Under the pieces are notes generated by a model. It was not told the DNA's origin. It saw nothing but the letters and a program-made list of their open reading frames with translations, and made no database searches. DNA of 64,000 nt from Octopus sinensis (lineage: Eukaryota): contig NC_043006.1 of assembly GCF_006345805.1 (NCBI RefSeq), positions 80,414,001-80,478,000 on the forward strand, written 5' to 3'. The first letter of the stretch is position 1; every line of letters starts with the position of its first letter. Shown here in pieces: positions 17,170 through 51,404 of this stretch. Both the position numbers and the translations under genes were made by a program.

Positions 17170-19077
17170 TTAGGAATGCATTTTGTACCAACATTTGCAG
17201 CACGATTCTTTGAAATGGCGTCTAACGACTTTCGTTGACAAGAGTGTAATACTAATTATTAAACCGACATACGCATTCCCTATTAAGCTGATCACGAAAA
17301 CGTCGTAAATTTCGGCAATGGCAGATAATGGTATTATTAACCATGTTAAACCCATTATAAGGCTTAATTTAAAATAAACCATAATTCCTATATTCTTACG
17401 TACCCCAAGATATTTTGATGAGTTTTTCCTAGCAAAACAGAGACCCACAACTATGACGATGAAAATCAACGCATTCATTGATAAAAGTGTTATCAGCGGA
17501 ACTCCAAGAAACCACTTCGGAATTTCATTTCTCCCAAACAAACAAAAATATTCCACTGGATCTTTAGGAGGAATGTACTGCAAATATATCAATGTTGCAA
17601 TGACAATTATAAGCGGAGACATCCAAGCATATAAGGAATAAAAGATAAATTTCTTCCCTTGTTTTTCAACAATTGGAAACTTTTTAATTCCTGAAAATAC
17701 ATATGAAGCATCAAATGATATAACATTCATCCAAAAAGCAGACGCTAACACGAAATACTGCAACAATATGTCGTATACATTGCACGCAGATTGATATTGT
17801 ATAAAAAAGTCGATGAAACATAAAAACACTGTTGCAAACATTGAGGATAAAAGTTCAATGGTTAGTTTACCTGGTAATGTACGGAGTTCTGGTATACAGA
17901 AATAGACCGTAATAGTGATGATTAGAGCTACACTGGAGCACAATGCTCCCGTAATTAGAAGGTACACTTTAAGATCAATACGCGCCTTTCTCTTATAATT
18001 ATTTACACAAATACTAATACCTTGGGGATCTCGAATGAATTCTGACTGGTTTAGCACCGTTCTGGAAGAATTCAGATAGATATATCCATCAAGATTGAAA
18101 GAATACTCAGACTCTTTTAATCTTTCGGTGGTACAATTTAAGATGAAACTAAAGTCAACTTGTCGGCATTTAATCTTCAGTTCGTCGTAAAGAAATCCAG
18201 GTGAACAATATGGCAGTTCTTTCAAATATACTTTTTCATTATTTGCATTTAATAGTTCAACTGTGTTATGATTATAGTTAAATATTGCTATTTGTCTGTA
18301 CTCCTTCTTTCCATGTGATATTTTTGAAGAGATCGTCACGTTGCACTCAATATTATTAATACCAATACCATTACAAATTGCGCAGTGAATGTTTCTAAAA
18401 CTAGTCCCATTTGATCTGACAATAGCCATTGGTACAAACATACAAGGAGAATCTAAAGATGCATTGGTAAATTTTGTGGGACAACTTGAAACATAATCAG
18501 TGCATGGATATTGGTAATCGCTAAAGTTCAATGGCGCTTCAATCGATACATTACAATGATTATTTCTCAATATGCGAGGGAAGTTTGATAAATCTATATC
18601 TATCTGATGATTGCATTTGTAGTGAACTGTCCATAATATATATTCTTCACCGTTGCACAGAGCACAGAACAAATTCCTGTAAAGTCTTTTAGTTCGTTTT
18701 CCCAGAGCAGGTATGTTGTATAATTGGTCATTCTCATTCGGTGTTTCACAATAGGTAAGGTGTTCTGTAATTGAATGGTCGCTTGGACAGCGATCAAAGA
18801 GAAAATAACTTTCTAATTTATTATCACTAATTTTCCTGCAACTATAATCTACTGATAAGGTTCCATGGTCACTTATTGTTTCATTAATTACGTCTGAACA
18901 ACATTCATTATATAGATTACAATATTTATGACAAGAACATCTTCTTTGCAAACTTTCTGTATCACAAAGTGAATGATGACATTCAATATTTTTCACCGAA
19001 CAATATGAAAGCTGGATAACGTGGTCTTCAAAAGCTATCAGCAGAATGTGTAAGAGATTCCAGAAATGATGTTTCAT
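17170..19077 (-). CDS. Type-A receptor 1: SMB-like/Cys-rich ectodomain class-B (Methuselah/adhesion-like) GPCR, 635 aa, intact single-exon CDS
   Basis: ATG start, hydrophobic N-terminus, RCSCHKYCNLYNECCSD (SMB-like), two RNxxCAxCN modules; 7 hydrophobic segments with PELRTLPGK, C..LLQYFVLASAFWMNVISFD, YSLYAWMSP, YFKLSLIMGLTW; no GPS motif. Confidence 0.93.
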   Translation of the reverse strand: MKHHFWNLLHILLIAFEDHVIQLSYCSVKNIECHHSLCDTESLQRRCSCHKYCNLYNECCSDVINETISDHGTLSVDYSCRKISDNKLESYFLFDRCPSDHSITEHLTYCETPNENDQLYNIPALGKRTKRLYRNLFCALCNGEEYILWTVHYKCNHQIDIDLSNFPRILRNNHCNVSIEAPLNFSDYQYPCTDYVSSCPTKFTNASLDSPCMFVPMAIVRSNGTSFRNIHCAICNGIGINNIECNVTISSKISHGKKEYRQIAIFNYNHNTVELLNANNEKVYLKELPYCSPGFLYDELKIKCRQVDFSFILNCTTERLKESEYSFNLDGYIYLNSSRTVLNQSEFIRDPQGISICVNNYKRKARIDLKVYLLITGALCSSVALIITITVYFCIPELRTLPGKLTIELLSSMFATVFLCFIDFFIQYQSACNVYDILLQYFVLASAFWMNVISFDASYVFSGIKKFPIVEKQGKKFIFYSLYAWMSPLIIVIATLIYLQYIPPKDPVEYFCLFGRNEIPKWFLGVPLITLLSMNALIFIVIVVGLCFARKNSSKYLGVRKNIGIMVYFKLSLIMGLTWLIIPLSAIAEIYDVFVISLIGNAYVGLIISITLLSTKVVRRHFKESCCKCWYKMHS

Positions 19078-19103
19078 GCTGAATATATATTTTATAGAGG
19101 CAC

Positions 19104-19112
19104 CTATAATTT
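19104..19112 (-). promoter_or_regulatory. Putative 3' splice acceptor of a 5'UTR intron
   Basis: AAATTATAG|GTGCC 26 nt upstream of the ATG; equivalent AG at 47766-67, 23672-73 and 51439-40 in the three paralogs. Confidence 0.4.
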
Positions 19113-19770
19113 AAAAGTGTTTATGTCTCATTACATTTGCAGCATCCAAAATTTGATTTTGTTCATGGTATATTGAGACTATATTTCTGTTAGCAAATAT
19201 GGACATATAATTAAGATTTACTAAATAATATGAGGATGAACAGTTGAATGAAATACGTCGCTACTGTTGACTCTGTTAAAAGAAAGAAAGTAAGAATACG
19301 TTAAGATTTTGTTAAGCAAAAACTAAGTAATATAATAATGCAGGAAATACACCACAACACTGAGGTCAAAGGAAGCTTGTAAAGATATATCTTATGCAAT
19401 TTGATTGTGAAATTTGTTGAAAATTTCTTTGATTACTAGCAAAGACTCCATATTTTAAAAACAAAGATTGTGAGGTAGGAGTAAATGTAAGCATTTCGTA
19501 TTTCGAAAGTATAGAAGTGGAATGCATTGTAATACTGAATGAAAAAGTCTTAAGAATATTGCTTGGTTCATAGTTTGGAATACAAAATGTTTGTATTACT
19601 TTTATATGCCAAGTTTCATACAAACTCATGACATAAAAAAAACTCACCGTTACATCAATCTAGTCATGCAGATTTTGAAATATCGTTCTAATGACAAGCC
19701 TGGAATACAAATACTTGTTAATGAGATGAGAGACTATAACTTCATACATATACATTGGTTTTTATATATA

Positions 19771-21005
19771 CCGGGGTTTTCCGAAAATCCGCCCATCCAT
19801 TAGATCGCCCATGGGCGTTTTTTTTGGATGGGTGGTAATTTGAGTTGAAACGGAGTTAGTGTTCTTGTTTGCAGTTTGATTAGACGTTCATTTATTCTAT
19901 GTCTGTATATAAATTCAAAGGATTTGTATTCTCGATAATGGAGTCGAGAAAAATATATCAAAACGTGTTCAACTATCATATAACATTCGTAAAACTTTGA
20001 AGAACATTCTGGCAATTTATCTGTTGCGTCAAGTGACAGGTATTGATAGAAAACTATAGAGAGAATGGCGCCCAAAAGAAACTGAGTTAATCCATGTTAG
20101 ACAAGAGAAAGCGCAGATCAATTGGTGGAAGTAGGGGACCAGCACATAAGGATCTGGAGATTGAAATCTTATTGTGGATTATTGCTCAGTGTGCAAACAA
20201 TATAATTGTAAATTATCGCCGTTTATGAGAATATACTTCGTGCTGAATGGGAGAGTTGGTTTTCAAAAGGCAAAAAGGAGTATACAAAAGGCAAAAAGAA
20301 ATATACAAGGATATCGCACAAAAACCTTCTTATCAAGAGATAGTGAATTTTGTGACCCAAGATGTTGCCACTTTAAATAAAGAAATGTTATATGATCGTT
20401 GAACACGTTTTGATATATTTCTTTTACTCCATTACTCCAAACAAGAACACTAACTCTGTTTCAACTGAAACTCACGCTTACAGGATGTTTTGTCTGGCCT
20501 TCAGGTAAATGCACCAGATGCACATAATGACAAAATTGAAGAAGATGAGATTCAAGTAAATGAAATTTGCTTTGATGTGGATTATGACCAAGCAACAAAT
20601 GAAGAAATTTGTGACTTGTAACTATTCGGTTATTGATCTACCATATATGCCCAAGGACATTATTTGTTCATATGAGGCTTGTATTCAAGTTTTCAACAGT
20701 TTAATATTTCCTCATTAAACCATTGTTAACTTCAGAATATTTTTTAATATGATACTTCTTTTAAGGCTGTTTCAATCTTTTATGCCTATATATCTGGTAA
20801 CTGAAAGGATAGAAATTCAATGGAATTGTATAAAATAAATATGGTTTTTGAGAATATTTTTGTTTTTCCTAGGTGAAATATTTTACTTCAATATTAGCGC
20901 CCATGTGCGCTTATTATAAGTGGGCGGTTATCTAAGCTCCAAAATAGTTTTGTAAAATAGAATTTTCCGTTTAACATTCCTGGGCGGATTTTCGGTAAAT
21001 CATAA
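19771..21005. mobile_element. Non-autonomous TIR element (hAT-like MITE)
   Basis: Left TTTTCCGAAAATCCGCCCA (to 19795) vs right TGGGCGGATTTTCGGTAAA (from 20981); no transposase ORF; only the right part survives in unit B (~48010-48300). Confidence 0.6.
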
Positions 21006-21069
21006 GTATTTGCATCCATCCATTCTATGAGTGACAAATCACAGTGTGGAAAGTTTTGAATTGGCAGCA

Positions 21070-21235
21070 AATCGGTGTAGATTAAGAGAACAATACCTCT
21101 GTAGTTACCATACATTATTCGGGCTCCTTTTCCTTCATAGAGAGGAAGAATAATTGCATCCTTCCAATCCTTAAGCATTGCACCATCCCCACCAGACTAC
21201 ACTAATAGGTTCATGAAGGGACTGTATTATGTAAT
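21070..21235 (-). mobile_element. RTE-clade LINE reverse transcriptase fragment (unit A copy)
   Basis: KDWKDAIILPLYEGKG..GNYRGIVL; same position as the longer unit B copy. Confidence 0.8.
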
Positions 21236-21736
21236 CACAACAAAATCGTGAGAGGCAATCAAATGATTCAAGCAACCAAAAATAATTAATCTCTGAAGCT
21301 GTAATTACAGTTTACTTTCGGATATTCCTTCTCTTTTGATGTACTATGTAGAAACATTGAATGAGGCGGCAATTTAATAGTGTTTCCATTTAACTATGTA
21401 CACTCATTTATGATGCTATTTTCAGTTCATGTCATTGTTGGGTATGCAACTATATTAGTTAGGCATCACTCTTGAGGGTGAAAGCGGCGTATATTTTTCG
21501 GCTACAAATTGATTGAGGAATGATGTTTGCGGTGTTTGTGTTCGGGAATATTATTTCGTAGTGGGATCATTATTTTTAATGGAGAAATAACATAAAAACA
21601 ATATAACTTTTGAAAGTTGAGGTTTTTTATGGTATTCTGAGCGTGTAGTAACAGATCCGTTAGGTGTAGGAAAAACTTGACTATACTTGTGATTTGTGTG
21701 CGGTGAAATGATTAAATCAAATTCATTTCATGAATA

Positions 21737-23637
21737 TTATTTTGTTTCGTGAAATAATTTGCAGCATTCTTGTTTGAAATGACGTCTAACGGTTTTCGTT
21801 GATAAAAATGTAATACAAATTATTAAACCGACATAAGAATTTAATGTGACGCATATAGTGATTGCGTCATGCATATAGGCATAGGCAAATATTGGTATAA
21901 AAACCCAAGTGAAACCCATAATAAGGCTTAGTTTAAAATAAATCATAAATCCTGTTTTCTTACGTAGTCCAAGATATTTTGATGAGCTTTTTCTAGCTAA
22001 ATAAAGACATATGACGGTAATGAAAAACATCAACGTATTAATTGATAAAATTGTTGTTATAGGAAATGCAAAAAACCACTTGAAACTCACGTTCCCAAAA
22101 TAACAAAGAAAATGTCCATGCGTAAGTTTAGGAGAAATGTTCAGCGAAAATAGCAGTGCCACTATCACAATTGCAAGTGGAGTTATCCAAGCATATAAAG
22201 AATAGAAGATAAACCTCTTCCCTTGTTTTCCTGCAACTGGAAATTTTATAATTCCTGAGAACGTGTACAAGGCATCAAATGATATGACATTCATCCAGAG
22301 GACCGGTGTTAGTATTAAATAATGCAACAATGGGTGTAATACAAAACACGGTATTCGAATTTTAGTAAACCTGACGATCAAGAAAAAAAATTCGATTACA
22401 AACATGGAGAACAACAGTCCCATGATTAGTTTACCTGGTAATGTACGGAGTTCTGGTATACAGAGATAGACTGTAATAGTTATGAATATTGCTACAACGG
22501 AGGACAATAATCCGATATACATCAGAGAAAATAAAACCCCTATCTGCCCTCTTGTCTCATGATCATTTACACAGATACTTATGCCTTGAGGATCTCGACT
22601 GAACTCTGACTGGTTTAGCCATGTCTGGGAAGAATTCAGATATAGAAACCCATCACTAGTAATGTGATATTCCGATTCCTCAAGTCTTTTGGTTGTACAA
22701 TTTAACACGAAATTAAATTCAACTTGTCGGCATTCATTCTTTAGTTCATCATAAACAAATCCATGCGAACAAGGGGACAATTTTTTAATATAGTTTTTTT
22801 CAGTAGATGCATATAATACTTCAACAGTGTTATTATTGTAATTAAATATTGTTTCGAAAGTATACACTTCTATTTCATATGTCATTTCTCTAGAGACAGT
22901 TATGTTACATTCTGTATCATTAATATCAACACTGTTACAGATGGCGCAGTGAATATTTCTGAAATTAGTTCCATTTGATGTTACCATAGACATTGGTTCA
23001 AACATACAAGAAGACACTAAAGTTGCATTGGTAAGTTTTATAGGACAGCTTGAAACATAATCTGTACAGGGATATTGGTAATCTTTAAAGTTAAATGGAG
23101 CTTCAATCGATACATTACAATGATTATTTCTCAACATTTGAGAGAAGAGTGATAAATCTATATTCATCCTATGTTTACATTTGTAGTGAACTGTCCACAA
23201 TAGGTATTCTTCTCCATTACACAGAGCACAGAACAAATTCCTGTAAAGTCTTTTAGTTTTTTTTCCCAAAGCAGGTATGTTGTATAATCGGTCATTCTCG
23301 TCTGGTGTTTCACAGAAAGTAACGTGCTCTGTAACTGAATGGTCGTTTGGACAGCGGTCAAACAAAAAGTAACTGTCTGATTTATTATCGTTAATTTCTC
23401 TGCAGCTATAATCTGTTGACATTGTTCCATGTTCAAGTATCGTTTCGCTGATCACGTCTGAACAACATTCTTTATATAGATTACAATACTGATGACAAGA
23501 ACATCTTGCAAACGTTCAGCATCACAAGTTGAAGGAGAACATTCGAGATTTTCTACCAAACAATATGACTGTTTAATGATTTCGTTCGCAAAAGCAACAG
23601 AAAAAATCTGAAAGAGATTCCCGAAGTGGTGTACCAT
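21737..23637 (-). pseudogene. Type-B receptor 1: same GPCR family, one 4-nt frameshift deletion in the SMB-like domain
   Basis: ATG at 23637 (MVHHFGNLF). At 23506/23507 TTGCA-AGATGT lacks 4 nt relative to the paralogs (TTGCATCAAAGATGT). The remaining 572 codons are open with all 7TM motifs; the ORF-track start at 23455 is a GTG. Confidence 0.85.
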
Positions 23638-24569
23638 GTTGAATATTAATGTTGAATTCTCAAGTAGCCATCTGTATTTCCGAATAATTTACACAACGAA
23701 TAAACATTATATTTGATTTAATGTCAAGCTGTATTGAGACTATTTCTTCTTGAAATAGTAACAAGATAGTCCATTGAATGAATCGTTTAATAACTGTTGC
23801 ATCTGTAAAAGATAAAAAACAACAAAAGCAAAAAATAAACGAACACCGTATTAAGATGATGTTTAACAAAATTTACAAAGGAAGCAGTATAATAAGGAAG
23901 AAAACTTGATATCAACTAACATTATAACGGAATTTCGTAAATGTACATACTAGGCAAGAACGCAAAAAACGTTTTATATATTTTAAACAAAATTCGTAAG
24001 GTAAAATTTGAAATTAAATCATTTCGTAATGGTACAAATGACGTAAGTAGTAAATGTGGAAAATATTGAATGATTATGGTGACTCTAAATGGGATTTGTT
24101 TTTCGATTCTGTGGCTTCATCTCCGTGTTAGAATATTTGTTGTTTATATCTTTTGAATTCTCAGGCACGTCTCATATAACTTTACAGCATAACGGGAGAA
24201 AACTCGCCGTTACAAGTCCAGGACCCAAATGTTTGAATTTCCAATGGACGTTCTCATATCATAACTAATAACGAGTTGAGAATTTGGAAAACAAATACAC
24301 GTCACTGAGAGTAGAATTTATAACCATAGATCCTTAAATATATATAAGAACGCTTGTCACAAAATTGTTCATCCTGAAAACGACAGCCTCAGAAGGAGCA
24401 ATTTCTGGAATATAAGGGAAGTGCGACAGCAACAATAGCGATACCCTGGTCATCTTTTCCACGTCGTTAGTAAGCAGCATGCTGATTATTGTGCAACCTG
24501 TGAATACACTTTAAGCCCATTTTGAGTATGACGAGATCATTACGAATAATAATTCTGCACACACAGAGA

Positions 24570-24654
<85 letters not shown>

Positions 24655-24658
24655 TATA

Positions 24659-24694
<36 letters not shown>

Positions 24695-24714
24695 CATATA
24701 TATATACACACATG

Positions 24715-25020
24715 TGGAGGCGCAATGACCCATTAGTTAGGGCAGCGGACTTGCGGTCGCAGGATCGCGGTTTCGATTCGCAGACCGGGCATTGTGAGTG
24801 TTTATTGAGCGAAAACACCTAAAAGCTCTACGACGCTCCGGCAGGGAGTGGTGATCCCTGCGTACTCTTTCAACACTCTTTCTCCCACTCTTTCTTCTGT
24901 TGGCCTGCTCGTTTAGCCATTGGGGTGGCGTCATTCGAAGGCTAAAACAATTCTAACGCATTGTGACCAGCGATGTGTAACAACATCTGATGGTCTGGTC
25001 GGTCACGTGATCACGTGATA
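24715..25020 (+). mobile_element. tRNA-derived SINE
   Basis: GGCGCAATGACCCATTAGTTAGG..GGTTTCGATTCG A/B boxes; same family as 57575-57882. Confidence 0.8.
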
Positions 25021-26419
25021 TACACACATATATACGGATATATATACGTATAATTATGTATAGAGATTTGTTACGACGTCAATAAATTTACATCTATATG
25101 ACTAAAAATCACATCGTTTTCATGCTAAAGTAATACGTAGAGGTTGTAAGTGTAGTGTGGATGATATACACGATTTCGCCTGACCACCACTAGCATAGCC
25201 GGAGTGTTTACATCATTGTTAACAGTTAGAAAAAGCAGAAACAAAAAAAAAAGCAAGAAGCAACACACTTTTGCACATTCTTATCAGTGGAATCTTTGCC
25301 AAGTTGAATTAATTACCATAGCTTCAGATGAAGTTGTTCGCGTGTAAATAAGGCTCCATTGTTAAACAACAAATCTTACTCTGTTCAAGCAACTGAAACA
25401 CAATACATATATTCATTTTCGCACGCGCTCACGCATACCCGTAACCATATACACACACATATGTACATATATATATATATATATATACATATAGGCGTGT
25501 GTATGATAAAATACATTCATAAATACACAGATGTGGATATAGATATGTGTGTGTGCGTGTGTGTATTTGTTCGTGTATGTTCATTCACGCATGTGTGTGT
25601 GAGTGTAGTGTAATATTTTTTGTACCGCTTTACCTTAATATTTGAATATTTGATATTTGTCATTTACATTTTCCTAGAAACGGCTACAACTATTTCAGAT
25701 ACCGCGACCATGTATATTGTAATATTTTGCATTTTGCATTGCATCGTCTGCATAACGTCTGAACGTATAATTGTTTACTAGCACACCGGCGAATCATTTG
25801 TAAGCTGCAAATTCACGCCTATGCACCACAGAAATATACGGATAGTATACTTTGAAAACGGTGCTGAAATTTCATTTCAAAGCATTACATAAGAAAAAAC
25901 ATTTGAATACAAGAATTTATAACGAACAGTTACCATTAAGTAAATAATATTTAATTTACCTGATAGAAAAAGTAATTGATAACCTCATGAAGCTTTGAAA
26001 AGTCGGAGAATTAAGTGATTCCAAGAGTAAAATCTGTTAATTTTGCTGATTTCTGTATTCTATATATTTCAGTTCTGCTAAATACTTCTGACGGCTGCTG
26101 CAGTAATGGTTGTTTTTATAAGTTTTCCAGTTTCGGTATTTTCAAAATGAAGAAAACGGAAAATATATTTCAACCAATTGAGGTGCGTTACGACATTAAA
26201 GATTATTGTAGCTAGATAGTATTTTCCTTTACATTATTTTATATTTTTCCATTTTTATTAATTGTCAATTATTAACAATTTGATATGATTATCCCTTATA
26301 TTACAAAATAATTGTAGTAAAATGATTTTACTAGCCAGGGATAATTAGTTATGCTAATAGCTATACCAATTATCAAATGTACGACATAAAATATTTTATT
26401 GCTCCACAAAGTTTTGCAG

Positions 26420-27620
26420 TATCTCGATAGCGCTTCTTTGGATGTTCTGGTTCAATTCCAGTAATATATTGTTTAATCCGAATTTAGCTTAATTTTTTTT
26501 TTTTAAGTTAATAAATTTCCAGATGTTGGAGTGATGAGACCCAACTTGAGTTTTGAATGCTCGGTGCTATTCTTCGATGAAGTTATGTGTTTTGGTGAAA
26601 TCGTCTAGAACTCTTAAATAAATATTCCACATATTTAGTGGGAAGAGAAGTGTGCGTCACACATCCCTTCTTTTAGACCTTGCAATCCACGTATCCTCGA
26701 AATAATCAATGATTGTTTGCGCTTCATCCTAGAAGGTGTTGTTATCAAATAATAACTCATATGCTCTTTTTGCCCTACATGCTGGGACAAATGTTAATGC
26801 TGGTAACATCCTCATCACTAAAGCAAAATTAGGGTCTATTTCATATTTTCGTTTTAAACAATTACTTTGAATTACAGGAAAGATAGATTGGCTGAAGAGG
26901 AAAAAGCAAACGTTTTGTTCTGCACAAGGAAATTCTTTCAAAAATGCTTTCATCATCGCTTTCTCAAAAGCGATCGTTATTGACAATGGTGCACATGTTG
27001 GTTCAAGATTTTTTATCTCCTGCAAAAACGTTATATATGTTTCTTCTGTTTTGTCCGGCAATAACAAAAACACGAACGGCAGCAAAGCTTTCCCTTTTAA
27101 ACCATGTAGGGTATATAACTGGTGAAAAACTGTACATTAAGCCGCAAATATCACAATTCGCTTTTCGACTGGTCCTGAGTCATAAAGTAGAAATTGAACA
27201 CCTTTAAAAGATTTAGTAATTTCAGGTGGGAATAATATTTTACTGCAAGTTGGTGGTAAGGCCGGTCCAATAAGTGTTTGTTACCTTATAGATCTTATTG
27301 TTCTTTTACTACTTAGCATTTTTGGTAGTTTGCAGGCAACAACTTGATCGCAATCATCCAGAACAGTAGATAAGACTGAACGGGGCGCATGTTATGTTGA
27401 TTTGGCCAGTTAAATTATCTTTGAAATGGCGTCTTTTGTTGCAATGTCAGCTGCGCCCTATATACGATTATGGTCGTTGGAAGACTTCACCATTTCATCC
27501 TATACAGTAAATAATTACTGTAAAGGCATTATGTTGTTGGATATTTTTCGCACTTCCAATAAACATGTTCCCCATGTTCATAGTATGTCCATTATCACCC
27601 AACTTGTAACGCCTTTTTTC
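26420..27620 (-). mobile_element. Mutator-like (MULE) transposase pseudogene with FLYWCH-like N-terminus (unit A)
   Basis: VYWKCEKY..NDH; LPFVFLLLPDKTEETY; ITIAFEKAM..EFP..CFFLFSQ; RMLPALTFVP. Confidence 0.85.
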
Positions 27621-27768
27621 TGATTCAGTAAATGCAGCAGTCGTCTTTAGTTATGTGTGTTTTCCCTGTGAATAATTCCAAATAACAAATATTTTATTAT
27701 GAAAATATTTTTCTTAGTAAACAGCCATTTTTATTCCACTTAATAGTAAACATCTAGTTTTATTCGAT

Positions 27769-28045
27769 ACTAGCAGTATTGCTCGGCGTTGCTCGGGTTT
27801 GTTTTCTCTTCGACCCTTTAGAATTGGAATTTTTGAAAAGTAAACCTTTTGCTTTATACAGCTTGTTACGTGAACATTTTCCCGGTTGAAATAGACCAAA
27901 AATAGCAACACAGCAGTGGAAAATCGTAAAAATACGGATTATCATAGAAAAAACAACTTTTGAATAAATAATTGTTGGTCTTAACATGGTCCCATTTGAA
28001 TTTTCCCTTTTACGAAATGAAGAGCAAGCCTTCTTCTATGATACT
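27769..28045 (-). mobile_element. Helitron-like non-autonomous element 3' end (unit A)
   Basis: Reverse strand CCCGAGCAACGCCGAG..CTAG-T (GC-rich subterminal segment plus CTAG); duplicate at 62142. Confidence 0.55.
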
Positions 28046-29123: not shown

Positions 29124-29157
<34 letters not shown>

Positions 29158-38922: not shown

Positions 38923-38982
<60 letters not shown>

Positions 38983-39706: not shown

Positions 39707-39782
<76 letters not shown>

Positions 39783-40065: not shown

Positions 40066-40066
40066 A

Positions 40067-40110
<44 letters not shown>

Positions 40111-41189
40111 CATTATTATCCTTATGTTTATTGATATTATTATTATTATCATTTAAACATTTTTTTTATATTAAATATAACTATCAAAAAGTATTAAAAG
40201 TTTTATATAAGATAAAGAGGAAGACCACTATGACCGTTTCATGCCCATATACCAATTCGAATAGCAATAATTTAAATTCAATTAATAATTCGAATTATAG
40301 TAATAGTCAATCTCCAGGATAATTATAATATTTAAATAAATAATCAGAAATATTTAAACAATATTTCTTAAGCAATAAATAATATAATAATTCTTCTTAT
40401 AAGAATCTCTATTATCAAACTAGAAACTTAACGATTATGATTATGTCATACAATCGATTATAATGTTAAATATTAATTTTAAGTTTTAAGTATTAATTTT
40501 TAAGGTAATATTAGTTATAGTCAATATCTAATTACATAAATATTTTACAAAAAAATAACTATTCATATTATTAAATATATAATATTTGAATAATATATAA
40601 ATAATCAATGAAAATATACAAATGTATATAAATATTATAATTAGGATATAAAATTATCTCTATCAATAAATATATATGCACGTACAATAAATAACTAATA
40701 AATTAATTCTTCACTATTACTAATAAATTTATTAAAAAATTAAGGATGAAATAGATAATTGTAAAAAAACAATCAATCCGAAACGAATGCTATAACAAAT
40801 TAACAATCTATATATCACGTTAGCTAACTAATAACTTTCAAAAATTGTATAGTTAAAATATAATAATATAAAATACTTAATGAAATAGTCGATCCGTAGT
40901 TATATAGTATCAAATAAACACTACATATATATTTATGAATGGGAAGAATATTACTACCATTATCGATTTAAAAAGACAATATATAAGTTATAATAACAAT
41001 TATAAGAAATTAAAATAACTATCAGCAAATATAGTTATTTTAGAGTAAAAATAATGCTATCAAACATGTATATATATGAAACCTAACTTTAAACAACTCG
41101 TATAGCTGTTGTCGAACTATATATCTCTATGGCTAATTAAAGTCTTACTAATAAAAGTAAAGTTAATATCTAATAATTATATACAAAAA

Positions 41190-42240
41190 TTACTATAATT
41201 AGATCATTACATAAACATCGATATTTACATAAAAAAACAATATTATACGATAAGATTTTGGCAGTAATTACAGCTTGAAGTCTATGAGGTAGGGACTCGT
41301 TCAAATTTTGAATTGTTTGGAAAGGAATTTTTATCCATTCTTCATCTAAATCAGTCTCCAATTCTTGTAGAGGTGAATGATATCGACTTCTTACTTGTTT
41401 TTCTACAACGCACCTTAAATGTTCAATAATATTGAGAACTGGAGACTGTGTGCTCAGATAAGTTATTCCACTTCACTAGAATGTTCCTTGTGCCATTCAG
41501 TAACAACTTTAGCTGAGTGAATTGGTGCATTATCATCCTGAAAGATTGCATTTCGCTCCGGAAACAGTTCTGCAACCATAGGATGAATTTGATCAAATAC
41601 TATGCTGAAACAGTCTTGAGTAATTCTACCATGAAGGGAAACCATTGGGCCGGCGGAGTTCCTAGATATAGCCGCCCAGAACATCACAGATCCTCCTCTA
41701 TGTTTAACTGTGTGTGTCAAATGCTTCTTTTGTTGGTCTCCACTGGTATAGTTGGCCGGTGGTCGGAAATGCTGTAAACGATGACTCTTCCGAGAAAATA
41801 ACATTCTTCCAATGCTCAAAGGACAAATTCTGTAGCTTTTTACTCCACTCTAAACGCTTTGCAACATTTGGTTTTAAAAGTAGTGGTTTTCTGATTGCAT
41901 CTCTCCCGTGAAATCCAGCTTTGCGCAGCTCCCTACGAACAGTTTTTGTGGAACCTGGGATCTAGACGTGGTCATTAAGCTCTGTAGTAATTTTGGGAGC
42001 CGCACTTTTGTGTTCTTTTCTAACAGTTCGCATAAGAATCCTACGGTGCCTATCTGACATTTTGGTTTTCTTCCGGAGTTTTGTTTTGTAGAGGAGGTTT
42101 TGCACTCTTTTTCAAACGCTGTCATACATTCGAGACTGTACTCCTTGCTACACCAAACATTTCGGCTGTTATCGTTACGCTAGCGCCTGTCATACGTACA
42201 CCAACAATTTGACCACTTTGAACGTCAGATAGATGTGTCA
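41190..42240 (-). mobile_element. Second Tc1-family transposon pseudogene
   Basis: TVKHRGGSVMFWAAIS, AIFQDDNAPIH, EEWIKIP..LNESLPHRLQAVITAK; many frameshifts. Confidence 0.85.
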
Positions 42241-43022
42241 TTTTAATGAATTTTAATTACCTTTAATTACCTTATATACTATTATAGAAGCTTATCGTAT
42301 AGGTCGTAATTCTTGTTGTGTACTAATGAAGTTAAGGAAACATTATTTAATAATAATAAAATATTGGTTAATTACGTAGACGAGCGAAAAATTGAATGCA
42401 ACCATAAATTACATTACTTATATAAGTTTAGCGATTTTTCCGTATATATAAAACACTTTATTATGTTACTAATTTGCTGTAGATATAATTTATCTACAGT
42501 ATATAAATTAGCATGATATTTTATGTTGTATATTACATTATTTGAATACGTTTAAACTTGAATGTTTCTTAAATAAATGAATATATAATTTATTGAATAT
42601 CTATCAATTATAGTAATATAAATTAATGTAACTATATTATGAATATTTTACGCATTTTATTATTAATTGTTTCTACTTTAAATCTTCTACTAAATAATAA
42701 TTTATAGTTTTGCTTTTTGTTCTATTACTCTCTGATTCTAAAATCTTAAATATCGTTCGCGATTTTCATTAATATAATACATACTACTATATAGTTATTT
42801 AATTTTTTTATTTACGCAACGTCTTCACGAGATAAATTTATTATAAACGCAAAGGCCTACGTGTTTACATTTAAAATTCAGTTAACAGATTTTCTTAGAT
42901 GTCATGAATTTCTTGTTAAAACAATATTGTTGAATTTTGTTTGGCTTTGATTGTAAAAATATTGATTTCTATATTTTTATTTGTTAATTATATGCTATGA
43001 TACGTATACTTATTTACTTATG

Positions 43023-43086
<64 letters not shown>

Positions 43087-43090
43087 TTTT

Positions 43091-43179
<89 letters not shown>

Positions 43180-44264
43180 TTGTAATCTATAATCTTAACG
43201 TATTGCATATAATTTACATTGGGAAATAGTTTTGTAAGACAAAATCTTACCGAATAGGTAGTAATTGTCTTTACTTGTTATGTAATATTGCATTTAAATA
43301 AATATTTTTGATAATTATAGAAACTTTGGTTAATTCTATAAATGAGTGAAGTATTAAATCAAAACATAAATTGAATTAATCATATGATAAGTTAAACTAA
43401 TATTTGTGTGTATATATTTGAAACATTTTTCTATTTTTATTTCTCGTAGTTATAATTTGTAGTAGTATTATATATATAAGTTAGCATATAGTTTTTAGCA
43501 TATATTACATAATTAGAATAAGATTTAAAATTAGATGTTTATTAAATAAATACATAAATAAATAATTTAATGGACATAGATTAAATTATAGTATTTTAGC
43601 TTCACTTAATGTATATTATGTATTTTATATATGTTGTTTTAAATATTTTGTTCTTCTATAAGCTAAAATATATTTTCATAGATAAAATTAATATTTCTAT
43701 ATATTTATTCTATTTTAATTTACACCACGTTTTTAACGAGATAAATTAATTATAAACGCTAGGTCCTACGTATTACGTTTAAATATGTAGTTAACGGAAT
43801 ATATTCAATAAGATATTTCATATTTTTATTTTAAGATATAGTGTTGAATTTTGTTCGATTTTTTATTGTAAAATTACGTATTTTTATATATAATTTTATA
43901 TTTTCTTTTAAGATAATATACGTGCATTTATTTAATTATTTTATTGTTTTTATCTTGGACCTGATGAGTGAATATATTTAAATTGAATTGATTTTATTGT
44001 GAACAATTTGAAAATATAGCCAAGAAACACAATTCATATAATATGTATATTTTATTTCGTACTTTACTTAGTTCTAGGTCAATGTATTATCGTCTCATTA
44101 ATTTTTTTCTATATGGAATGATTTAAGTATATCATTGTTGAATTGCTACATGGTGGTTCTTCTATAATTTATATACATAAATTATATATTATGAAATTTT
44201 ATTTAGAATTACTAAATTGAATTTTCCCTGTGAGTTTTGAATCATATTACCTAATATTATTATG

Positions 44265-44887: not shown

Positions 44888-45831
44888 CATATTTAGATAT
44901 ACCTATACTTAGTTAGAAACTTATTAGCAGTGTAAATATACATGAGATACATTCGAACTTTTAATCCATCCATGGTATTTTGTCATAGAGTAACTTTCCC
45001 ATTATAGACACATATAGGTGCAAGAGCACCACTTAAGTTCTCAGAGTCCCCTAACCAGGCTGATGGAATCATACATTTCGGAGTTGTTATTTCCGCCTCA
45101 GTGCCACATACTGGAAAGTAAAGTGCCACAAACTGACAAGCGAAAGGTATCTGTTGCTATATCTTATACATGAGAAACAGTGAACATTTCAATCCAACTT
45201 TACACGGATATTCCCAGATGCTGAGACGTATGTATAAGCTATTTTTCAAACGATATCACGTAGGACCTTAGATGAATTGTGAAATTAACTGAGAAGAATT
45301 ATCAGGGAATATTTGTTTCGTGATAGAACTTTCTGCAAAGAGTCGGTCAGCTGATCCTTTCTTTCCCTTCATCTGAATAATTCACACGGCCAATTATGAA
45401 TTCTCAAAGACTACTTTTGCTTTGTATGTATTATGGATTTTCTCTCTCCCTAGATCTAACGAGTGAAACATTGATGGAAGCGACAATTAGCATGGTATTC
45501 TCATTTTTGGTATACTCATATTTGATGTCGTTTTGAACGTTGATCGATATACTACTTCATTGCACAAACAGCAATCCAGAGGACGGTGGGATGGTTTGGG
45601 TGGAATTGTCTCATTTACCAATTGAATAATGAATGACGCCTCTAGGATTTTGTTTTGGACTGCATTTCTTGATTCGGGAAGCAAAATTTTAGAGAGAAAT
45701 AACATACTTTAATGTGATGAGAGTTGAAGAGTTTATATGTATACCAAGTGGGTGGTAATTGGTGACTTATACGATTTAGTTAAACACCTAACTTATATAG
45801 TGTAATACGATGAAATCAATTAATTTCCTAA

Positions 45832-47739
45832 TTAGGAATGCATTTTGTACCAACATTTGCAGCACGATTCTTTGAAATGGCGTCTAACAACTTTCGTTGT
45901 CAAGAATGTAATACTAATTATTAAACCGAAATAAGCATTTCCAATTAAGCTGATATAGAAAACGTCGTGCAATTTGGCAATGGCACCTAATGGTATTATA
46001 TACCATGTTAATCCCATTATAAGGCTAAATTTAAAATAAATCATAATTCCTATATTATTACGTACCCCAAGATATTTTGATGAGTTTTTCCTAGCTAAAC
46101 AGAGACCCACGACTGTGACGATGAAAATCAAAGTATTCATTGATAAAAGTGTTATCAGCGGAACTCCAACAAACCACTTCGGAATTTCATTTCTATCATA
46201 CCAACAAAAATATCCGTCCGAATCTTCAGAAGAAATGGTCTGCGAATATATCAATGTTGCAATCACAAATATAAGTGGAGACATCCAAGCATATAAGGAA
46301 TAAAAGATAAATCTCTTCCCTTGTTTTTCAACAATTGGAAACTTTATAATTCCTGAAAATGTGTATAAAGCATCAAATGAAATAACATTCATCCAAAAAG
46401 CAGACGCTAACACGAAATAATGCAACAATGACTCGCCTATGTTGCACACCAAATGACGATCCGCAACAAAGTCGAAGAAATATAGAACCTCTGTTGCAAG
46501 TATTGAGAATAAAAGTCCAATGGTTAGTTTACCTGGTAATGTACGGAGTTCTGGTATACAGAAATAGACCATAATAGTGATGATTAGAGCTACACTGGAG
46601 GACCATATTCCCGTAAATAGAAGGTACACTTTAAGATCCATACCCACGTTTTTCCTATAATTATTTACACAAATACTAATACCTTGGGGATCTCGAATGA
46701 ATTCTGACTGGTTTAGCACTGTTCTGGAAGAATTCAGATAGATATTTCCAGCAAGAGTGAAAGAATACTCAGACTCTTTTAATCTTTCGGTGGTACAATT
46801 TACGATGAAACTAAAGTCAACTTGTCGGCATTCAATCTTCAGTTCGTCGTAAAGAAATCCAGCAGAACAATATGGCAATTCTTTCAAATATACTTTTTCA
46901 TTATTTGCATTTAATAGTTCAACTGTGTTATGATTATAGTTAAATATTGCTATTTGTCTATACTCCTTCTTTCCATGTGATATCTTTGAAGAGATCGTCA
47001 CGTTGCACTCAATATTATTAATACCAATATCATTACAAAATGCACAGTGTACGTTTCTAAAACTAGTCCCATTTGATCTGACAATAGCCATTGGTTCAAA
47101 AATACAAGGAGAATCTAAAGATATATTGGTAAATTTTGTGGGACAACTTGAAACATAATCAGTGCATGGATATTGGTAATTGCTAAAGTTCAATGGCGCT
47201 TCAATCGATACATTACAATGATTATTTCTCAATATGCGAGGGAAGTTTGATAAATCCATATCTATCTGATGATTGCATTTGTAGTGAACTGTCCATAATA
47301 TATATTCTTCATCGTTGCACAGAGCACAGAACAAATTCCTGTAAAGTCTTTTAGTTCGTTTTCCCAGAGCAGGTATGTTGTATAATTGATCATTTGCATT
47401 CAGTGTTTCACAATAGGTAAGGTGTTCTGTAACTGAATGGTTGCTTGGGCAGTGATCAAATAGAAAATAACTTTCTAATTCATTATCACTAATTTTCCTG
47501 CAATTATAATCCACTGATGAGATTCCATGGTCACTTATTGTTTCATTAATTACGTCTGAACAACATTCATTATAAAGATTACAATATTTATGACAAGAAC
47601 ATCTTCTTTGCAAACTTTCTGTATCACAAAGTGAAGGATAACATTCAATATTTTTCACCGAACAATATGAAAGCCGGATAACATGGTTTCCAAAAGCTAT
47701 CAGCAGAATGTGTAAGAGATTCCAGAAATGATGTTTCAT
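45832..47739 (-). CDS. Type-A receptor 2: paralog of 17170-19077, 635 aa, intact single-exon CDS
   Basis: Same length, same Cys pattern and 7TM motifs, no indels relative to receptor 1. Confidence 0.93.
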   Translation of the reverse strand: MKHHFWNLLHILLIAFGNHVIRLSYCSVKNIECYPSLCDTESLQRRCSCHKYCNLYNECCSDVINETISDHGISSVDYNCRKISDNELESYFLFDHCPSNHSVTEHLTYCETLNANDQLYNIPALGKRTKRLYRNLFCALCNDEEYILWTVHYKCNHQIDMDLSNFPRILRNNHCNVSIEAPLNFSNYQYPCTDYVSSCPTKFTNISLDSPCIFEPMAIVRSNGTSFRNVHCAFCNDIGINNIECNVTISSKISHGKKEYRQIAIFNYNHNTVELLNANNEKVYLKELPYCSAGFLYDELKIECRQVDFSFIVNCTTERLKESEYSFTLAGNIYLNSSRTVLNQSEFIRDPQGISICVNNYRKNVGMDLKVYLLFTGIWSSSVALIITIMVYFCIPELRTLPGKLTIGLLFSILATEVLYFFDFVADRHLVCNIGESLLHYFVLASAFWMNVISFDALYTFSGIIKFPIVEKQGKRFIFYSLYAWMSPLIFVIATLIYSQTISSEDSDGYFCWYDRNEIPKWFVGVPLITLLSMNTLIFIVTVVGLCLARKNSSKYLGVRNNIGIMIYFKFSLIMGLTWYIIPLGAIAKLHDVFYISLIGNAYFGLIISITFLTTKVVRRHFKESCCKCWYKMHS

Positions 47740-48384
47740 GCTGAATATATATTTTATAGAGCCACCTATAATTTAAAAGTAGTTATGTCTCATTACATTT
47801 GCAGCATCCAAAATTTGATTTAGTTCATGGTATATTCAGACTATATTTCTATTAGCAAATATGGACATATAATTAAGATTTACTAAATAATACGAGGATG
47901 ATCCGTTGAATGAAATACGTCACACTGTTGACTCTGTTAAAAGAAAGAAAGAATACATTAAGATTTTGTTTAACAAAAACTAGGTAATAAATTAATGTTT
48001 AATTTTCAGTATTTTCTAATATATCCATTGTTTGCTTCAGAATACTTTTTAATATGCTTCTTCTTTTAAGGCTCTGTCAATCTTTTATGCCTATATATCT
48101 GATAACCGAAACGATAGAAGTTCAATGGTATTGTATAAAATTTTGGGGAATATCTTTGTTTTTCCTACGTGAAATATTTTACTTCCATATTACCGTCGAT
48201 GGGCGCTCATGATAGGTGGGCGGTTATCTAAGCCCCCAAATAGTTTTGTAAAATAGAATTTTCCGTTTAACAGCCCTGGGCGAATTTTCGGAAAATCATG
48301 AGTATTTGCACCGATCCAATCCATGAGTGACAAATCACAGTGTGGAAAATTTTGAATTGGCAGCAAATCGGTGCAGATTAAAGA

Positions 48385-49000
48385 GGCGTCCACACGATCG
48401 ATACATGACATTTATTCCTAGAGGGCTAACATTAGCAAAAGCATGAGTAGAAGTAGCAGGAAAGAGTTGGGGCAAGGATGCCACCCTGCTTGACGCTATT
48501 CTCTACAGGAATCGTTCCCGCCATGCCACTACCAACATTGGCCCAAGCCTTTATCCCATCATGAAATGATTTAATTAAAGATACAAAGTGATACGGGCAT
48601 CCAATTTTGCCAAGTATTTTCCATAGTAATGCCCTATGTACAGTATCAGAGGTTTGGTTAAATCAAAGAATTCCTGGACAAGACCTATATTCTGCTAATA
48701 ACATTTCTCCTGCATCTGTCTTGCTGTGAAAATAATATCCATTGTTCCTTTACCAGATCAGAAACCACAATGAGATTCAGATAGAACATTTGCGAGGCAC
48801 ACATTCAGGCGGGTAAAAAGAATATTTGTCAGAACCTTGCCGGCAGGTGATAGTAGAGCAATACCTCTGTAGTTACCACACATTTTTCTGGTTCCTTTTC
48901 CTTTATAGAGAGGAAGAATAATAGCATCCTTCCAATCCTTAGGCATTGCACCATATCCACTAGACTACACTAATAGGCTCATGAAGGGACTGTATTATGT
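48385..49000 (-). mobile_element. RTE-clade LINE RT fragment (unit B copy, longer)
   Basis: PKDWKDAIILPLYKGKG..CGNYRGIALLSPAGKVL..LSESHCGF..TMDIIFTARQMQEKC. Confidence 0.85.
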
Positions 49001-49505
49001 AATCACCACCAAATCGTGAGTGGCAATCAAATGATTCAAGCAACCAAAAATAATTAATCTCTGAATCTTGTAACTACAGTTTACTTTCGGATATTCCTTC
49101 TCTTTTGATGTACTATGTAGAAACATTGAATGAAGCGGCAATTTGATAGTGTTTCCATTTAACTATGTACACTCATTTTTGATGCTATTTTCAGTTCATG
49201 TGATTGTTGGGTATGTAACTGTATTAGTTAGGCATCACTCTTGAGGGTGAAAGCGGCGTATATTTGTCGGCTACAAATTGATTGAGGAATTATATTTGCG
49301 GTGTTTGTGCTCGGGTATATTATTTCGTAGCGGGAGCATTATTTTTAATGGAGAAATAACATAAAAACAATATAACTTTTGACTGTTGAGGTTTTTTATG
49401 GTATTCTGAGCGTGTAGTAACAGATCCGTTAGGTGTAGGAAAAACTTGACTATACTTGTGATTTGTGTGCGGTGAAATGATTAAATCAAATTCATTTCAT
49501 GAATA

Positions 49506-51404
49506 TTATTTTGCTTCGTGAAATAATTTGCAGCATGCCTGTTTGAAATGACGTCTAACGGCTTTCGTTGATAAAAATTTAATATAAATTATTAAACCGA
49601 CATAAGAATTTAATGTGAAGCATATAGTGATTGCGTCATGCATATCGGCATAGCCAAATATTGGTATAAAAACCCAAGTGAAACCCACATTAAGGCTTAG
49701 TTTAAAATAAATCATAAATCCTGTTTTCTTACGTAGTCCAAGATATTTTGATGAGCTTTTTCTAGCTAAATAAAGACATATTACGGTAATGAAAAACATC
49801 AACGTATTATTTGATAAAATTGTTATTACAGGAAATGCAAAAAACCACTTGGACATCCAGTCCTTAAGATAACAAAGAAAATGTTCGTGCGGAAGTTTAG
49901 GAGAAATTGTCAACGAAAATAGCAGTGCCACTATCACAATTGCAAGTGGAGATATCCAAGCATATAAAGAATAGAAGATAAACCTCTTCCCTTTTTTCCT
50001 GCAAATGGAAATTTTATAATTCCTGAGAACGTGTACAAGGAATCAAATGATATGACATTCATCCAGAGGACTTGTGCTAGTACTAAATAATGCTCAATGG
50101 GTGTAATATAAAACACGGTATTTGAATTTTAGTATACGTGTTGATGAAGAAAAAAATTCGATTGCAAGCATGGAGAACAACAGTCCCATGATTAGTTTAC
50201 CTGGAAATGAACGGAGTTCTGGTATACAGCGATAGACTGTAATAGTTATGAATATTGCTACAACGGAGGACAATAATCCGATATACATCAGAGAAAATAA
50301 AAACCCTCTCTGCCCTCTTGTCTCATGATCATTTACACATATACTTATGCCTTGAGGATCTCGACTGAACTCTGACTGGTTTAGCCATGTCTGGGAAGAA
50401 TTCAGATATAGAAATCCATCACTAGTAAAATGATATTCCGATTCCTCTAGTCTTTTAGTTGTACAATTTAACACAGAATTAAATTTAACTCGTCGACATT
50501 CATTCTTTAGTTCAACATAAACAAATCCATGCGAACAAGGGGACAATTCTGTAATATAGTTATTTTTCAATAGATGCATATAATACTTCAACAGTGTAAT
50601 TATTGTAATTAAATATTGTTTCGAAAGTATACACTTCTATTTCATACGTCATTTCTCTAGACAGTTATGTTACATTCAGTATCATTAATATCAACACTGT
50701 TACAGATGGCGCAGTGAATATTTCTGTAATTAGTTCCATTTGATCTTACCATAGACATTGGTTCAAACATACAAGAAGACACTAAAGTTACATTGGTAAG
50801 TTTTAGGGGACAGCTTGAAACATAATCTGTACACGGATATTGGTAATCTTTAAAGTTAAATGGAGCTTCAATCGATACATTACAACAATTATTTCTCAAC
50901 ATTTGAGAGAAGAGTGATAAATCTATATTCATCCTATGTTTACATTTGTAGTGAACTGTCCACAATAGGTATTCTTCTCCATTACACAGAGCACAGAACA
51001 AATTCCTGTAAAGTCTTTTAGTTTTTTTTCCCAAAGCAGGTATGTTGTATAATCGGTCATTCTCGTCTGGTGTTTCACAGAAAGTAACGTGCTCTGTAAC
51101 TGAATGGTCGTTTGGAAGGCGGTCAAACAAAAAGTAACTGTCTGATTTATTATCGTTAATTTTTCTGCAGCTATAATCTGTTGACATTGTTCTATGTTCA
51201 ATTATCGTTTCGCTGATGACGTCTGAACAACATTCTTTATATAGATTACAATACTGATGACAAGAACATCTTTGATGCAAACTTTCAGCATCACAAGTTG
51301 AAGGAGAACATTCGAGATTTTCTACCAAACAATATGACTGTTTAATGACTTCGTACACAAAAGCAATAACAAATCTGAAAGAGATTCCCGAAGCGGTGTA
51401 CCAT
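49506..51404 (-). pseudogene. Type-B receptor 2: pseudogene with at least six frameshifts
   Basis: Versus 21737-23637: -2 in signal peptide (~51365), -2 at ~50660, +1 at ~50565, -1 at ~50152, -1 at ~50095, -1 at ~49995; DRCP changed to DRLP. Confidence 0.9.

Follow-up and report, generated by a model that had tools for sequence, protein, structure and literature searches.

A probable group 4 array of Methuselah-like class-B receptor genes in Octopus sinensis with two intact, unannotated copies and an apparently fast-changing outer bundle face

The window analyzed here comprises 64,000 nucleotides of the Octopus sinensis genome (NC_043006.1 of assembly GCF_006345805.1, positions 80,414,001 to 80,478,000 of the forward strand), and it is highly probable, at roughly 85%, that it covers part of a tandem array of G protein-coupled receptors (GPCRs) of a class-B, Methuselah-like kind belonging to the octopus-specific group 4 expansion. 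Two intact and unannotated receptor genes, termed A1 and A2, lie beside three decaying copies, and this is what the window adds to the known expansion. To judge from the pattern of substitutions, A1 and A2 appear to be selectively maintained genes in which the extracellular face of the seven-transmembrane (7TM) bundle changes fast.

Two octopus-specific expansions of class-B receptors were described for O. bimaculoides and Callistoctopus minor (Ritschard et al., 2019, Proc Biol Sci 286:20182929; PMC6408891). One of these, group 4, was reported to be Methuselah-like, co-localised in tandem and under uniform purifying selection with a ratio of nonsynonymous to synonymous divergence (dN/dS, omega) of 0.31. 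In Table S2 of that work, 'B 4' is the entry for the O. bimaculoides proteins P0004 (A0A0L8H6C9), P0007 and P0011 as well as for a cluster-mate of P0016, and according to Table S3 the O. bimaculoides paralogs carry the CDD domain cd15039 7tmB3_Methuselah-like. The proteins nearest to A1 are all Octopus 'Mth-like' class-B receptors. A1, A2 and the B-type copy B1 fall inside the group 4 set in a tree of the ectodomain (100% support) and within the octopus clade in a tree of the 7TM part. The genes of the window share with group 4 the gene family, the tandem co-localised organisation and the 7tm_2/Methuselah-like signature; they differ in that the A and B genes of O. sinensis are in no annotation found, that their ectodomain is undescribed in the paper, that their 7TM part is unusually divergent and that the histories of ectodomain and 7TM conflict. 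The original prediction had suggested an uncharacterised family, which does not hold insofar as the expansion was already published in 2019, albeit with no functionally tested member. A literature search for Methuselah-like receptors in cephalopods returned this study only.

To detect copies, a six-frame list of open reading frames (ORFs) was drawn up, the window was searched by tblastn with A1, and a DNA alignment of four copies was made. The tblastn search and the alignment revealed five related elements, every one on the minus strand:

17170-19077, minus strand: A1, intact single-exon coding sequence of 635 residues (ORF list, tblastn; Pfam 7tm_2, E=1.5e-12)
45832-47739, minus strand: A2, intact single-exon coding sequence of 635 residues (ORF list, tblastn; Pfam 7tm_2, E=5.2e-15)
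21737-23637, minus strand: B1, full-length B-type copy with a single 4-bp deletion near 23508 (codon 44)
49506-51404, minus strand: B2, pseudogene with six frameshifting indels and zero nonsense substitutions
30212-30412, minus strand: truncated remnant of a third copy, B-like (three-frame translation; tblastn queried with A1 and 24 members of the family)

The common strand and the (A,B)x2 order, both part of the original prediction, were confirmed by tblastn and the DNA alignment, and the fifth remnant that it postulated is the B-like relic. Its four full-length copies are full-length as far as length is concerned, while the frames are intact only in A1 and A2, which share 85.5% protein identity. 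B1 has its ATG at 23637 and its stop at 21737-21739. The 4-bp deletion, which is not present in the other three copies of the alignment, splits the signal peptide and the start of the somatomedin-B (SMB) module from the remaining protein; the frame 3' of it is open for 572 codons (longest ORF 21737-23455) and the called product, P0003 with 561 residues, starts at an internal Met at 23422. B2 has its ATG at 51404, the end coordinate of the original prediction, and its indels lie near 51369, 50662, 50562, 50157, 50095 and 49994. Half of these six are in homopolymer runs and could be assembly errors, which is unlikely for the three outside such runs, including two 2-bp deletions. The relic of about 67 codons covers the signal-peptide and SMB region only, contains an internal deletion and three stops and is truncated at 30212. 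That the coding sequence is intronless, as had been proposed, is borne out by the uninterrupted ORFs of A1 and A2 and by the gene spans of P0001 (O. bimaculoides), P0004 and P0024 (O. sinensis), which equal three times the number of residues plus three; introns may lie in the untranslated regions. A conserved splice acceptor, as a mark of an intron in the 5' untranslated region, was sought about 30-45 nt 5' of the ATG; A1, A2 and B2 have it, in B1 it is altered and P0024 and P0001 have none, so that no claim is made.

The predicted architecture is described for A1, on the minus strand throughout, with transmembrane helices (TM) and extracellular loops (ECL) taken from a full-length structural model:

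residues 1-25, 19003-19077, minus strand: predicted signal peptide with putative cleavage (sequence; in the model a helix 2-16 followed by a low-confidence linker)
residues 33-80, 18838-18981, minus strand: SMB-like Cys module (Pfam below threshold; profile of family N-termini against PDB)
residues 81-359, 18001-18837, minus strand: Cys-rich ectodomain, DUF8401 (PF28443, precomputed on B1 and paralogs)
residues 360-613, 17239-18000, minus strand: class-B 7TM (Pfam 7tm_2, full-length model, family profile)
helices in the model: TM1 360-394, TM2 401-423, TM3 429-461, TM4 470-499
helices and loop in the model: ECL2 500-518, TM5 519-557, TM6 563-588, TM7 591-613
residues 614-635, 17173-17238, minus strand: helix 8 and short tail (sequence; model helix 616-634, spanning CCKCW)

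The N-terminal module has the Cys spacing C-x4-C-x8-C-x-C-x3-C-x5-CC-x-D...C, with CSCHKYCNLYNECCSD at residue 47 of A1 and A2 forming the CxCxxxCxxxxxCCxD cluster. The Pfam model Somatomedin_B (PF01033) reaches 17.0 bits on the isolated A1 N-terminus and stays below its cut-off of 23.1 (E=0.0074; E=0.55 for P0005). However, a profile of 34 family N-termini matches solved SMB domains in PDB, i.e., EndoU SMB repeats (1.2e-6), vitronectin SMB 1OC0_B (5.2e-5), 2JQ8 (1.5e-4) and ENPP1 SMB (3.5e-3), with the core CxCDxxCxxYxxCCxD in register and the eight-Cys pattern present, and on this basis the module is accepted as SMB-like. PF28443 is precomputed for B1 (as P0003) and for all close paralogs, and since the ectodomain of A1 shares 70-75% identity with them, A1 would also belong to DUF8401. 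Both A1 and A2 contain 25 ectodomain Cys, including all that are conserved in the family, 9-10 N-x-S/T sequons and two RNxxCAxCN modules (RNLFCALCN at residue 134, RNIHCAICN or RNVHCAFCN at residue 228). A literature search on DUF8401 found nothing.

The bundle scores above the 7tm_2 (PF00002) cut-off of 20.6 bits in A1 (47.7), A2 (55.8) and B1 (41.7), with E from 1e-10 to 5e-15; GPS or GAIN domains gave no Pfam match at E<=1 in any of the three, and in the model TM1 is separated from the last strand of the ectodomain by a stalk of just a few residues. The motifs LRTLPGK (residue 398) and WMNVISFD (residue 449) are present. The Cys pair C432-C512 linking TM3 and ECL2, invariant in 63 relatives, is found in A1, A2 and B1, and core 7TM residues are kept, including W449, N451, P527, G576, W579 and G605. 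The tails end with ...CCKCWYKMHS in the A type and ...CCKLFHETK in the B type; between A1 and A2 the tail is identical in protein sequence with one synonymous difference, and the Cys cluster of CCKCW is a candidate palmitoylation site. Thereby, the SMB-like cluster, the Cys, sequons and modules of the ectodomain, the Methuselah/adhesion-like class-B bundle without GPS with its LRxLPGK and WMNVxxFD motifs, and the short CCKCW/CCKLF tails were all recovered as originally proposed.

AlphaFold2 models were built on 63-71 homologs and reached a predicted local distance difference test (pLDDT) score of 85.4 and a predicted template-modelling score of 0.76 for the ectodomain and a pLDDT of 85.1 for the full-length protein, which shows seven helices plus helix 8. 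A Foldseek search of the ectodomain model against PDB returned nothing at E<=1e-3 (best template-modelling score ~0.1, noise), phmmer of A1 alone against PDB sequences gave no matches, and the family profile matches PDB sequences in the 7TM only, leaving the ectodomain unmatched. As modelled, the ectodomain is thus one for which neither profile nor Foldseek searches of PDB detect a solved structural relative. The original prediction had also taken this architecture to be lineage-specific, which is contradicted by a profile of the ectodomain only: against 1.84 billion representative proteins it hits 2,820 clusters at E<=1e-3, of which 1,321 at E<=1e-10. The matched clusters are mostly 700-800 residues long, consistent with an ectodomain plus 7TM, and sampled members come from the bivalves Argopecten and Mactra, from the annelid Capitella and from the cockroach Blattella, with the common motifs CxCDxxCxxYxDCC and (Y/F)(R/K)NxxCAxCN. 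Going by these matches, the combination of SMB, Cys-rich ectodomain and 7TM is not lineage-specific.

A segmental duplication spanning at least 12.7 kb has produced the (A,B)x2 order. It was mapped by self-blastn of the window and consists of the blocks 16951-19340 versus 45625-47997 (92.1% identity), 21087-24688 versus 48855-52460 (94.1%) and 25064-29676 versus 59449-64000 (89.0%), the last of which reaches past the window end:

16951-29676, no strand assigned: duplication copy 1, with A1, B1 and a block carrying a MULE-transposon fragment (self-blastn)
45625-64000, no strand assigned: duplication copy 2, with A2 and B2, running beyond the window end (self-blastn)

The relic lies just past the last matched block of copy 1, so any counterpart would be outside the window. 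MULE-transposase fragments at 26729-27085 and 61148-61549 (Pfam MULE, E ~1e-7) occupy matching positions in both copies, which places the transposon insertion before the duplication. An additional ~6.5 kb between 52460 and 59449 is present in copy 2 only. It includes near-palindromes (52413-53011 with 84% and 54095-54311 with 94% self-complementarity) and a block of microsatellites (57880-58100).

The synonymous divergence (dS) was compared as follows:

dS of O. bimaculoides/O. sinensis orthologs: 0.08-0.11
dS of A1 versus A2: 0.08
dS of B1 versus B2: 0.05
dS of A versus B: 0.56-0.70

With 0.05-0.08 for the duplicates and 0.08-0.11 for the orthologs, the segmental duplication would date to about the time at which the species separated, and the A and B types diverged much earlier. 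It is very improbable that the two units merely represent two haplotypes of one (A,B) locus that were misplaced in tandem. Long-read assemblies are known to suffer from haplotypes that were left uncollapsed, and the window has an assembly gap of 100 N at 637-736. The copies are, however, 6-11% apart in DNA and 14.5% in the A protein, copy 2 carries the extra ~6.5 kb, about 16 kb of unrelated sequence separates the units, and the dS of 0.05-0.08 is near the level of interspecies orthologs and far above allelic levels. In the proposed course of events, an older duplication would have given rise to the A and B types, and the segmental duplication of at least 12.7 kb would then have copied the unit of A, B and the relic side at about the time of the split of O. 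sinensis and O. bimaculoides. Afterwards, A1 and A2 would have stayed open, B1 acquired one frameshift, B2 decayed and the third B-like copy been truncated. The predicted tandem birth-and-death turnover agrees with what is found, i.e., two intact genes, a frameshifted one, a decayed pseudogene and a relic.

Selection was analyzed by dN/dS according to Nei-Gojobori and by maximum likelihood, both of which agree. Between A and B an omega of 0.38 (p = 1e-13) indicates long-term constraint. For A1 versus A2 omega is 0.69 in the ectodomain and 1.47 in the 7TM (p = 0.19), neither of which differs from 1, and positive selection in the 7TM of the A pair is not claimed, the value above 1 being non-significant. 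The A pair has accumulated 138 substitutions with zero indels and zero stops. For comparison, 7 indels accompany some 90 substitutions in the B pair, and the non-coding flanks within the duplication show 45 gap openings to 361 mismatches. Extrapolated to the A pair, these rates predict 10-17 indels, and the simulated probability of staying free of stops is 0.06-0.14 per lineage. The replacements between A1 and A2 are strongly uneven along the protein, with ectodomain Cys, intracellular loops and tail conserved. The absence of indels and stops, the low stop-free odds and the uneven replacements together argue against neutrality of A1 and A2.

Several points weigh against regarding A1 and A2 as maintained members of a functional receptor array. 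Since the duplication, their overall dN/dS is 0.99, indistinguishable from neutral. Residues of ECL2 that vary little or not at all among about 60 relatives have been replaced, namely G507 and Y506 (A and B types) and W513 (A1 and B1), which could reflect loss of the ancestral activation mechanism; A436 and F447 in TM3, equally (near-)invariant in these relatives, are likewise replaced in A/B. A1 and A2 are absent from a collection of 5.8 billion proteins and neither is annotated. The annotation of A1 and B1 was judged from a 21.7-kb locus (L001, window 11737-33422, 100% match to CM016868.1 of GCA_006345805.1), in which A1 is uncalled and the sole called gene is the frameshifted B1 as the N-terminally shortened P0003; this is likely an annotation gap in the O. 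sinensis assembly. Moreover, the deletion in B1 and some of the B2 indels could be assembly errors, and G-protein coupling, ligand binding, glycosylation and palmitoylation are assigned from family knowledge.

Some of these points would also fit a non-functional sub-array, in which A1 and A2 are open by chance or only newly unconstrained and due to decay like B2. Besides the omega of 0.99, the missing annotation and the replaced ECL2 residues, it would agree with three of the five copies being already broken and with 7tm_2 E-values of 1e-12 to 1e-15, far weaker than the 1e-28 of the paralogs. This is nevertheless decidedly unlikely: besides the 10-17 indels several stops would have been expected along with the 138 substitutions, the joint chance of finding none being well below 1e-3, conservation of ectodomain, intracellular half and tail next to a non-conserved outer half is not what neutral decay predicts, and both A copies have kept the 25 ectodomain Cys and the core 7TM residues.

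The differences between A1 and A2 as well as those between B1 and B2 cluster at residues 408-440 (TM2-ECL1-TM3), 499-520 (ECL2) and 585-595 (ECL3), of which two patches are listed here:

A1 residues 408-440, 17758-17856, minus strand (46420-46518 in A2): hypervariable patch TM2-ECL1-top of TM3, with clustered A1/A2 and B1/B2 differences
A1 residues 499-520, 17518-17583, minus strand: hypervariable ECL2 patch, with clustered differences

The nucleotide distance is 0.21 in the stretch of residues 423-462 versus about 0.05 elsewhere, and the ECL1 patch is practically unalignable between A1 and A2. With outer and inner halves of the bundle set by the helix boundaries of the model, 45 of 132 residues differ between A1 and A2 in the outer half and 18 of 144 in the inner half (p = 2.5e-5); for B1 and B2 it is 28 of 130 and 13 of 142, respectively (p = 0.006). 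For the B pair, which includes a pseudogene, omega reaches 3.1 over the 7TM (p = 0.008) and, for the outer half, 5.4 (p = 0.005), among about nine tests. In the A pair, the outer half exceeds the inner half 3.7-fold in total divergence (t of 0.66 versus 0.18) at a similar omega (1.37 versus 1.64), meaning that silent change is raised in the outer half as well. Patchwise conversion from unsampled paralogs fits the outer-face pattern as well as selection does.

These data bear on a further explanation, namely that the genes are diversifying sensory or immune receptors, with A1 and A2 tuned to different ligands by positive selection on the outer bundle face. For either pair, the differences of the young copies are concentrated in TM2-ECL1-TM3 and in the loops ECL2 and ECL3, 7TM omega exceeds 1 in the A pair as in the B pair, the ORFs were kept despite an overall omega near 1, and the high pseudogene fraction and the intronless coding sequence would fit. 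In addition, some group 4 genes of O. bimaculoides were reported to be sucker- or skin-specific, such as P0011 with 0.46 in sucker and 0.54 in skin (PMC6408891). However, we regard this explanation as rather unlikely. The A-pair value is non-significant, the significant B-pair result comes with the limits given above, and the raised synonymous change in the outer half points to gene conversion or patch replacement rather than to selection alone. Group 4 as a whole is under uniform purifying selection (omega 0.31), and the nearest O. bimaculoides relatives are not sucker-enriched: P0004 was reported mainly in retina, salivary gland and viscera, and Ocbimv22021292m, probably P0001, mainly in supraoesophageal brain and axial nerve cord (PMC6408891).

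As to the place of the A and B genes within the family, O. sinensis P0024 (80.363 Mb) is in the same cluster at >=90% identity as O. bimaculoides P0001, and O. sinensis P0010 (80.389 Mb) is the counterpart of O. bimaculoides P0004. Relative to the direction of transcription the two are downstream of the window, and their order matches that of O. bimaculoides. The O. bimaculoides protein nearest to A/B is P0001 with 60% identity; as O. sinensis has its own orthologs of P0001 and P0004, A/B constitutes an additional sub-lineage. No A/B ortholog was found in the annotations of O. bimaculoides or O. vulgaris, and scans of 10 kb around P0001 and P0004 (O. bimaculoides) as well as P0010 and P0024 (O. 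sinensis), which do not extend to the syntenic O. bimaculoides position about 30-40 kb upstream of P0004, revealed no extra A/B-like copies. O. vulgaris P0028, which adjoins the P0001 ortholog, was ruled out as A/B ortholog with 35-41% identity. A short group 4 model of O. bimaculoides, Ocbimv22021294m (Scaffold31252:162408-163373; Table S2 of PMC6408891), is located about 32 kb upstream of P0004 at a position syntenic to A/B and could be the O. bimaculoides counterpart. LOC115216540, the O. sinensis ortholog of P0004 (L004:9573-11442, ~80.389 Mb, annotated with 365 residues), aligns to A1 in three frames; it is frameshifted at two points, being either a pseudogene or the product of an assembly error. 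The O. vulgaris models P0002 and P0028 contain two tandem ectodomains and little or no 7TM and probably result from fusing or mis-joining adjacent members of the family; gene annotation in this cluster looks likewise unreliable in O. vulgaris.

Ectodomain and 7TM of the A and B genes do not tell the same history. The A1 ectodomain is 75% identical to P0001 and 70% to B1, while its 7TM is 56% identical to B1 and 44-47% to P0001, P0024 and P0004. The nucleotide distance between A and P0024 rises from ~0.16 to ~0.39 near codons 343-382. Among codons encoding the same residue, the fraction that differs between A1 and P0024 is 23% in the ectodomain and 39% in the 7TM (p = 0.003), and between B1 and P0024 it is 19% and 35% (p = 0.005), whereas in the control pairs A1-B1 and P0024-P0004 silent differences are homogeneous across the halves. 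In the neighbour-joining tree of the ectodomain a single clade unites A, B and P0024/P0001, and P0004 is its sister (100% bootstrap), whereas in that of the 7TM the group of A1, A2 and B1 is basal to all other octopus paralogs (100% bootstrap). The simplest reading would be recombination or gene conversion between tandem paralogs at the junction of ectodomain and 7TM, possibly together with faster evolution of the 7TM. A more far-reaching proposal, to which we attach a low probability, is that A/B is a young recombinant lineage in which a conserved SMB and DUF8401 ectodomain, as in P0024, sits on a divergent bundle whose outer face is being rapidly rewritten; the rewriting in ECL1, ECL2, ECL3 and the adjacent helix ends may then be due to selection and/or to patchwise conversion from unsampled paralogs. 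If this were true, octopuses would diversify these receptors in the bundle with the ectodomain held fixed, and DUF8401, present in thousands of protostome GPCRs, would be a fold with neither a solved relative nor a known ligand.

Compared with known systems, the Drosophila Mth/Mthl receptors (Mthl1-15; PF06652 plus 7tm_2) have a class-B 7TM that may be of the same subgroup as that of A1; A1 matches Drosophila Mth2-type proteins at E ~1e-11, its 7TM being the most divergent of the octopus set. Drosophila Mth and the octopus receptors both possess a short C-terminal tail and a Cys-rich ectodomain and have no GPS. The Mth/Mthl family is defined on the 7TM and is prone to lineage-specific tandem expansion (PMC4768249). 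It was reported that the Methuselah ectodomain is an arthropod novelty and that non-arthropod Mthl proteins do not carry it (de Mendoza et al., 2016). In agreement with this, the octopus ectodomain profile does not match Drosophila Mth2-type proteins. The Methuselah ectodomain (PF06652, a ten-Cys fold, PDB 1FJR) gave no Pfam match at E<=10 and no PDB match, and together with the empty Foldseek result this argues against the Methuselah ectodomain, or another solved fold within reach of these searches, for the octopus ectodomain.

The best solved relatives of the 7TM are adhesion GPCRs (ADGRG6, ADGRG2, ADGRL2/3 and ADGRD1; E 1e-30 to 1e-26), with CRF receptors at 1e-13. Adhesion GPCRs resemble the octopus receptors in having a large extracellular region, but the octopus ectodomain is much smaller, of another type and without GAIN/GPS, so that an autoproteolytic tethered-agonist mechanism of the adhesion type is not expected. 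With vertebrate OR, V1R, TAAR and TAS2R receptors there is analogy only, in the single coding exon, the tandem birth-and-death, the pseudogenes and the variation of the ligand-facing bundle. The octopus family differs from these chemoreceptors in its GPCR class, its far smaller repertoire (45 sequences from two species in the work of 2019) and its large conserved ectodomain.

From what is known of the family, the intact product is predicted to be a secreted-pathway, N-glycosylated and disulfide-rich receptor composed, in this order, of signal peptide, SMB-like module, DUF8401 ectodomain of about 280 residues, seven-helix bundle, helix 8 and short Cys-rich tail. The bundle would be most similar to that of adhesion GPCRs, without the GAIN/GPS autoproteolysis domain, and the tail would probably be palmitoylated at CCKCW. 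An extracellular ligand may be captured jointly by the ectodomain and the outer bundle face, and the signal would then pass to heterotrimeric G proteins via the conserved intracellular face. The intracellular loops and helix 8, presumed to be the G-protein contacts, are nearly invariant between the copies; the extracellular loops and outer helix halves vary. This contrast of a conserved ectodomain and intracellular face with a fast outer face suggests a site of ligand specificity and could guide deorphanisation of the family. The label 'Methuselah-like' hides a distinct ectodomain, i.e., an SMB-like module plus DUF8401, that is widespread in protostomes. One segmental duplication is dated to approximately the split of O. 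sinensis and O. bimaculoides. Taken by itself, this locus leaves the knowledge of cephalopod sensing unchanged.

The remainder of the window consists of transposon fragments and microsatellites. Degraded DNA-transposon ORFs are found at 4580-5676 (plus strand), 12840-13343 (minus strand) and 41463-41819 (minus strand); the types comprise piggyBac-type DDE_Tnp_1_7 (two pieces), Tc1/mariner HTH_Tnp_Tc3_2 and a second mariner-like fragment without Pfam match. Between the duplication units the stretch 38000-44000 is strongly AT-rich (GC content 0.21-0.26). Long microsatellites of the (TATC/TATA)n type occur at several sites, e.g., 16600-16950 and 37310-37710, and are the source of many spurious long ORFs.

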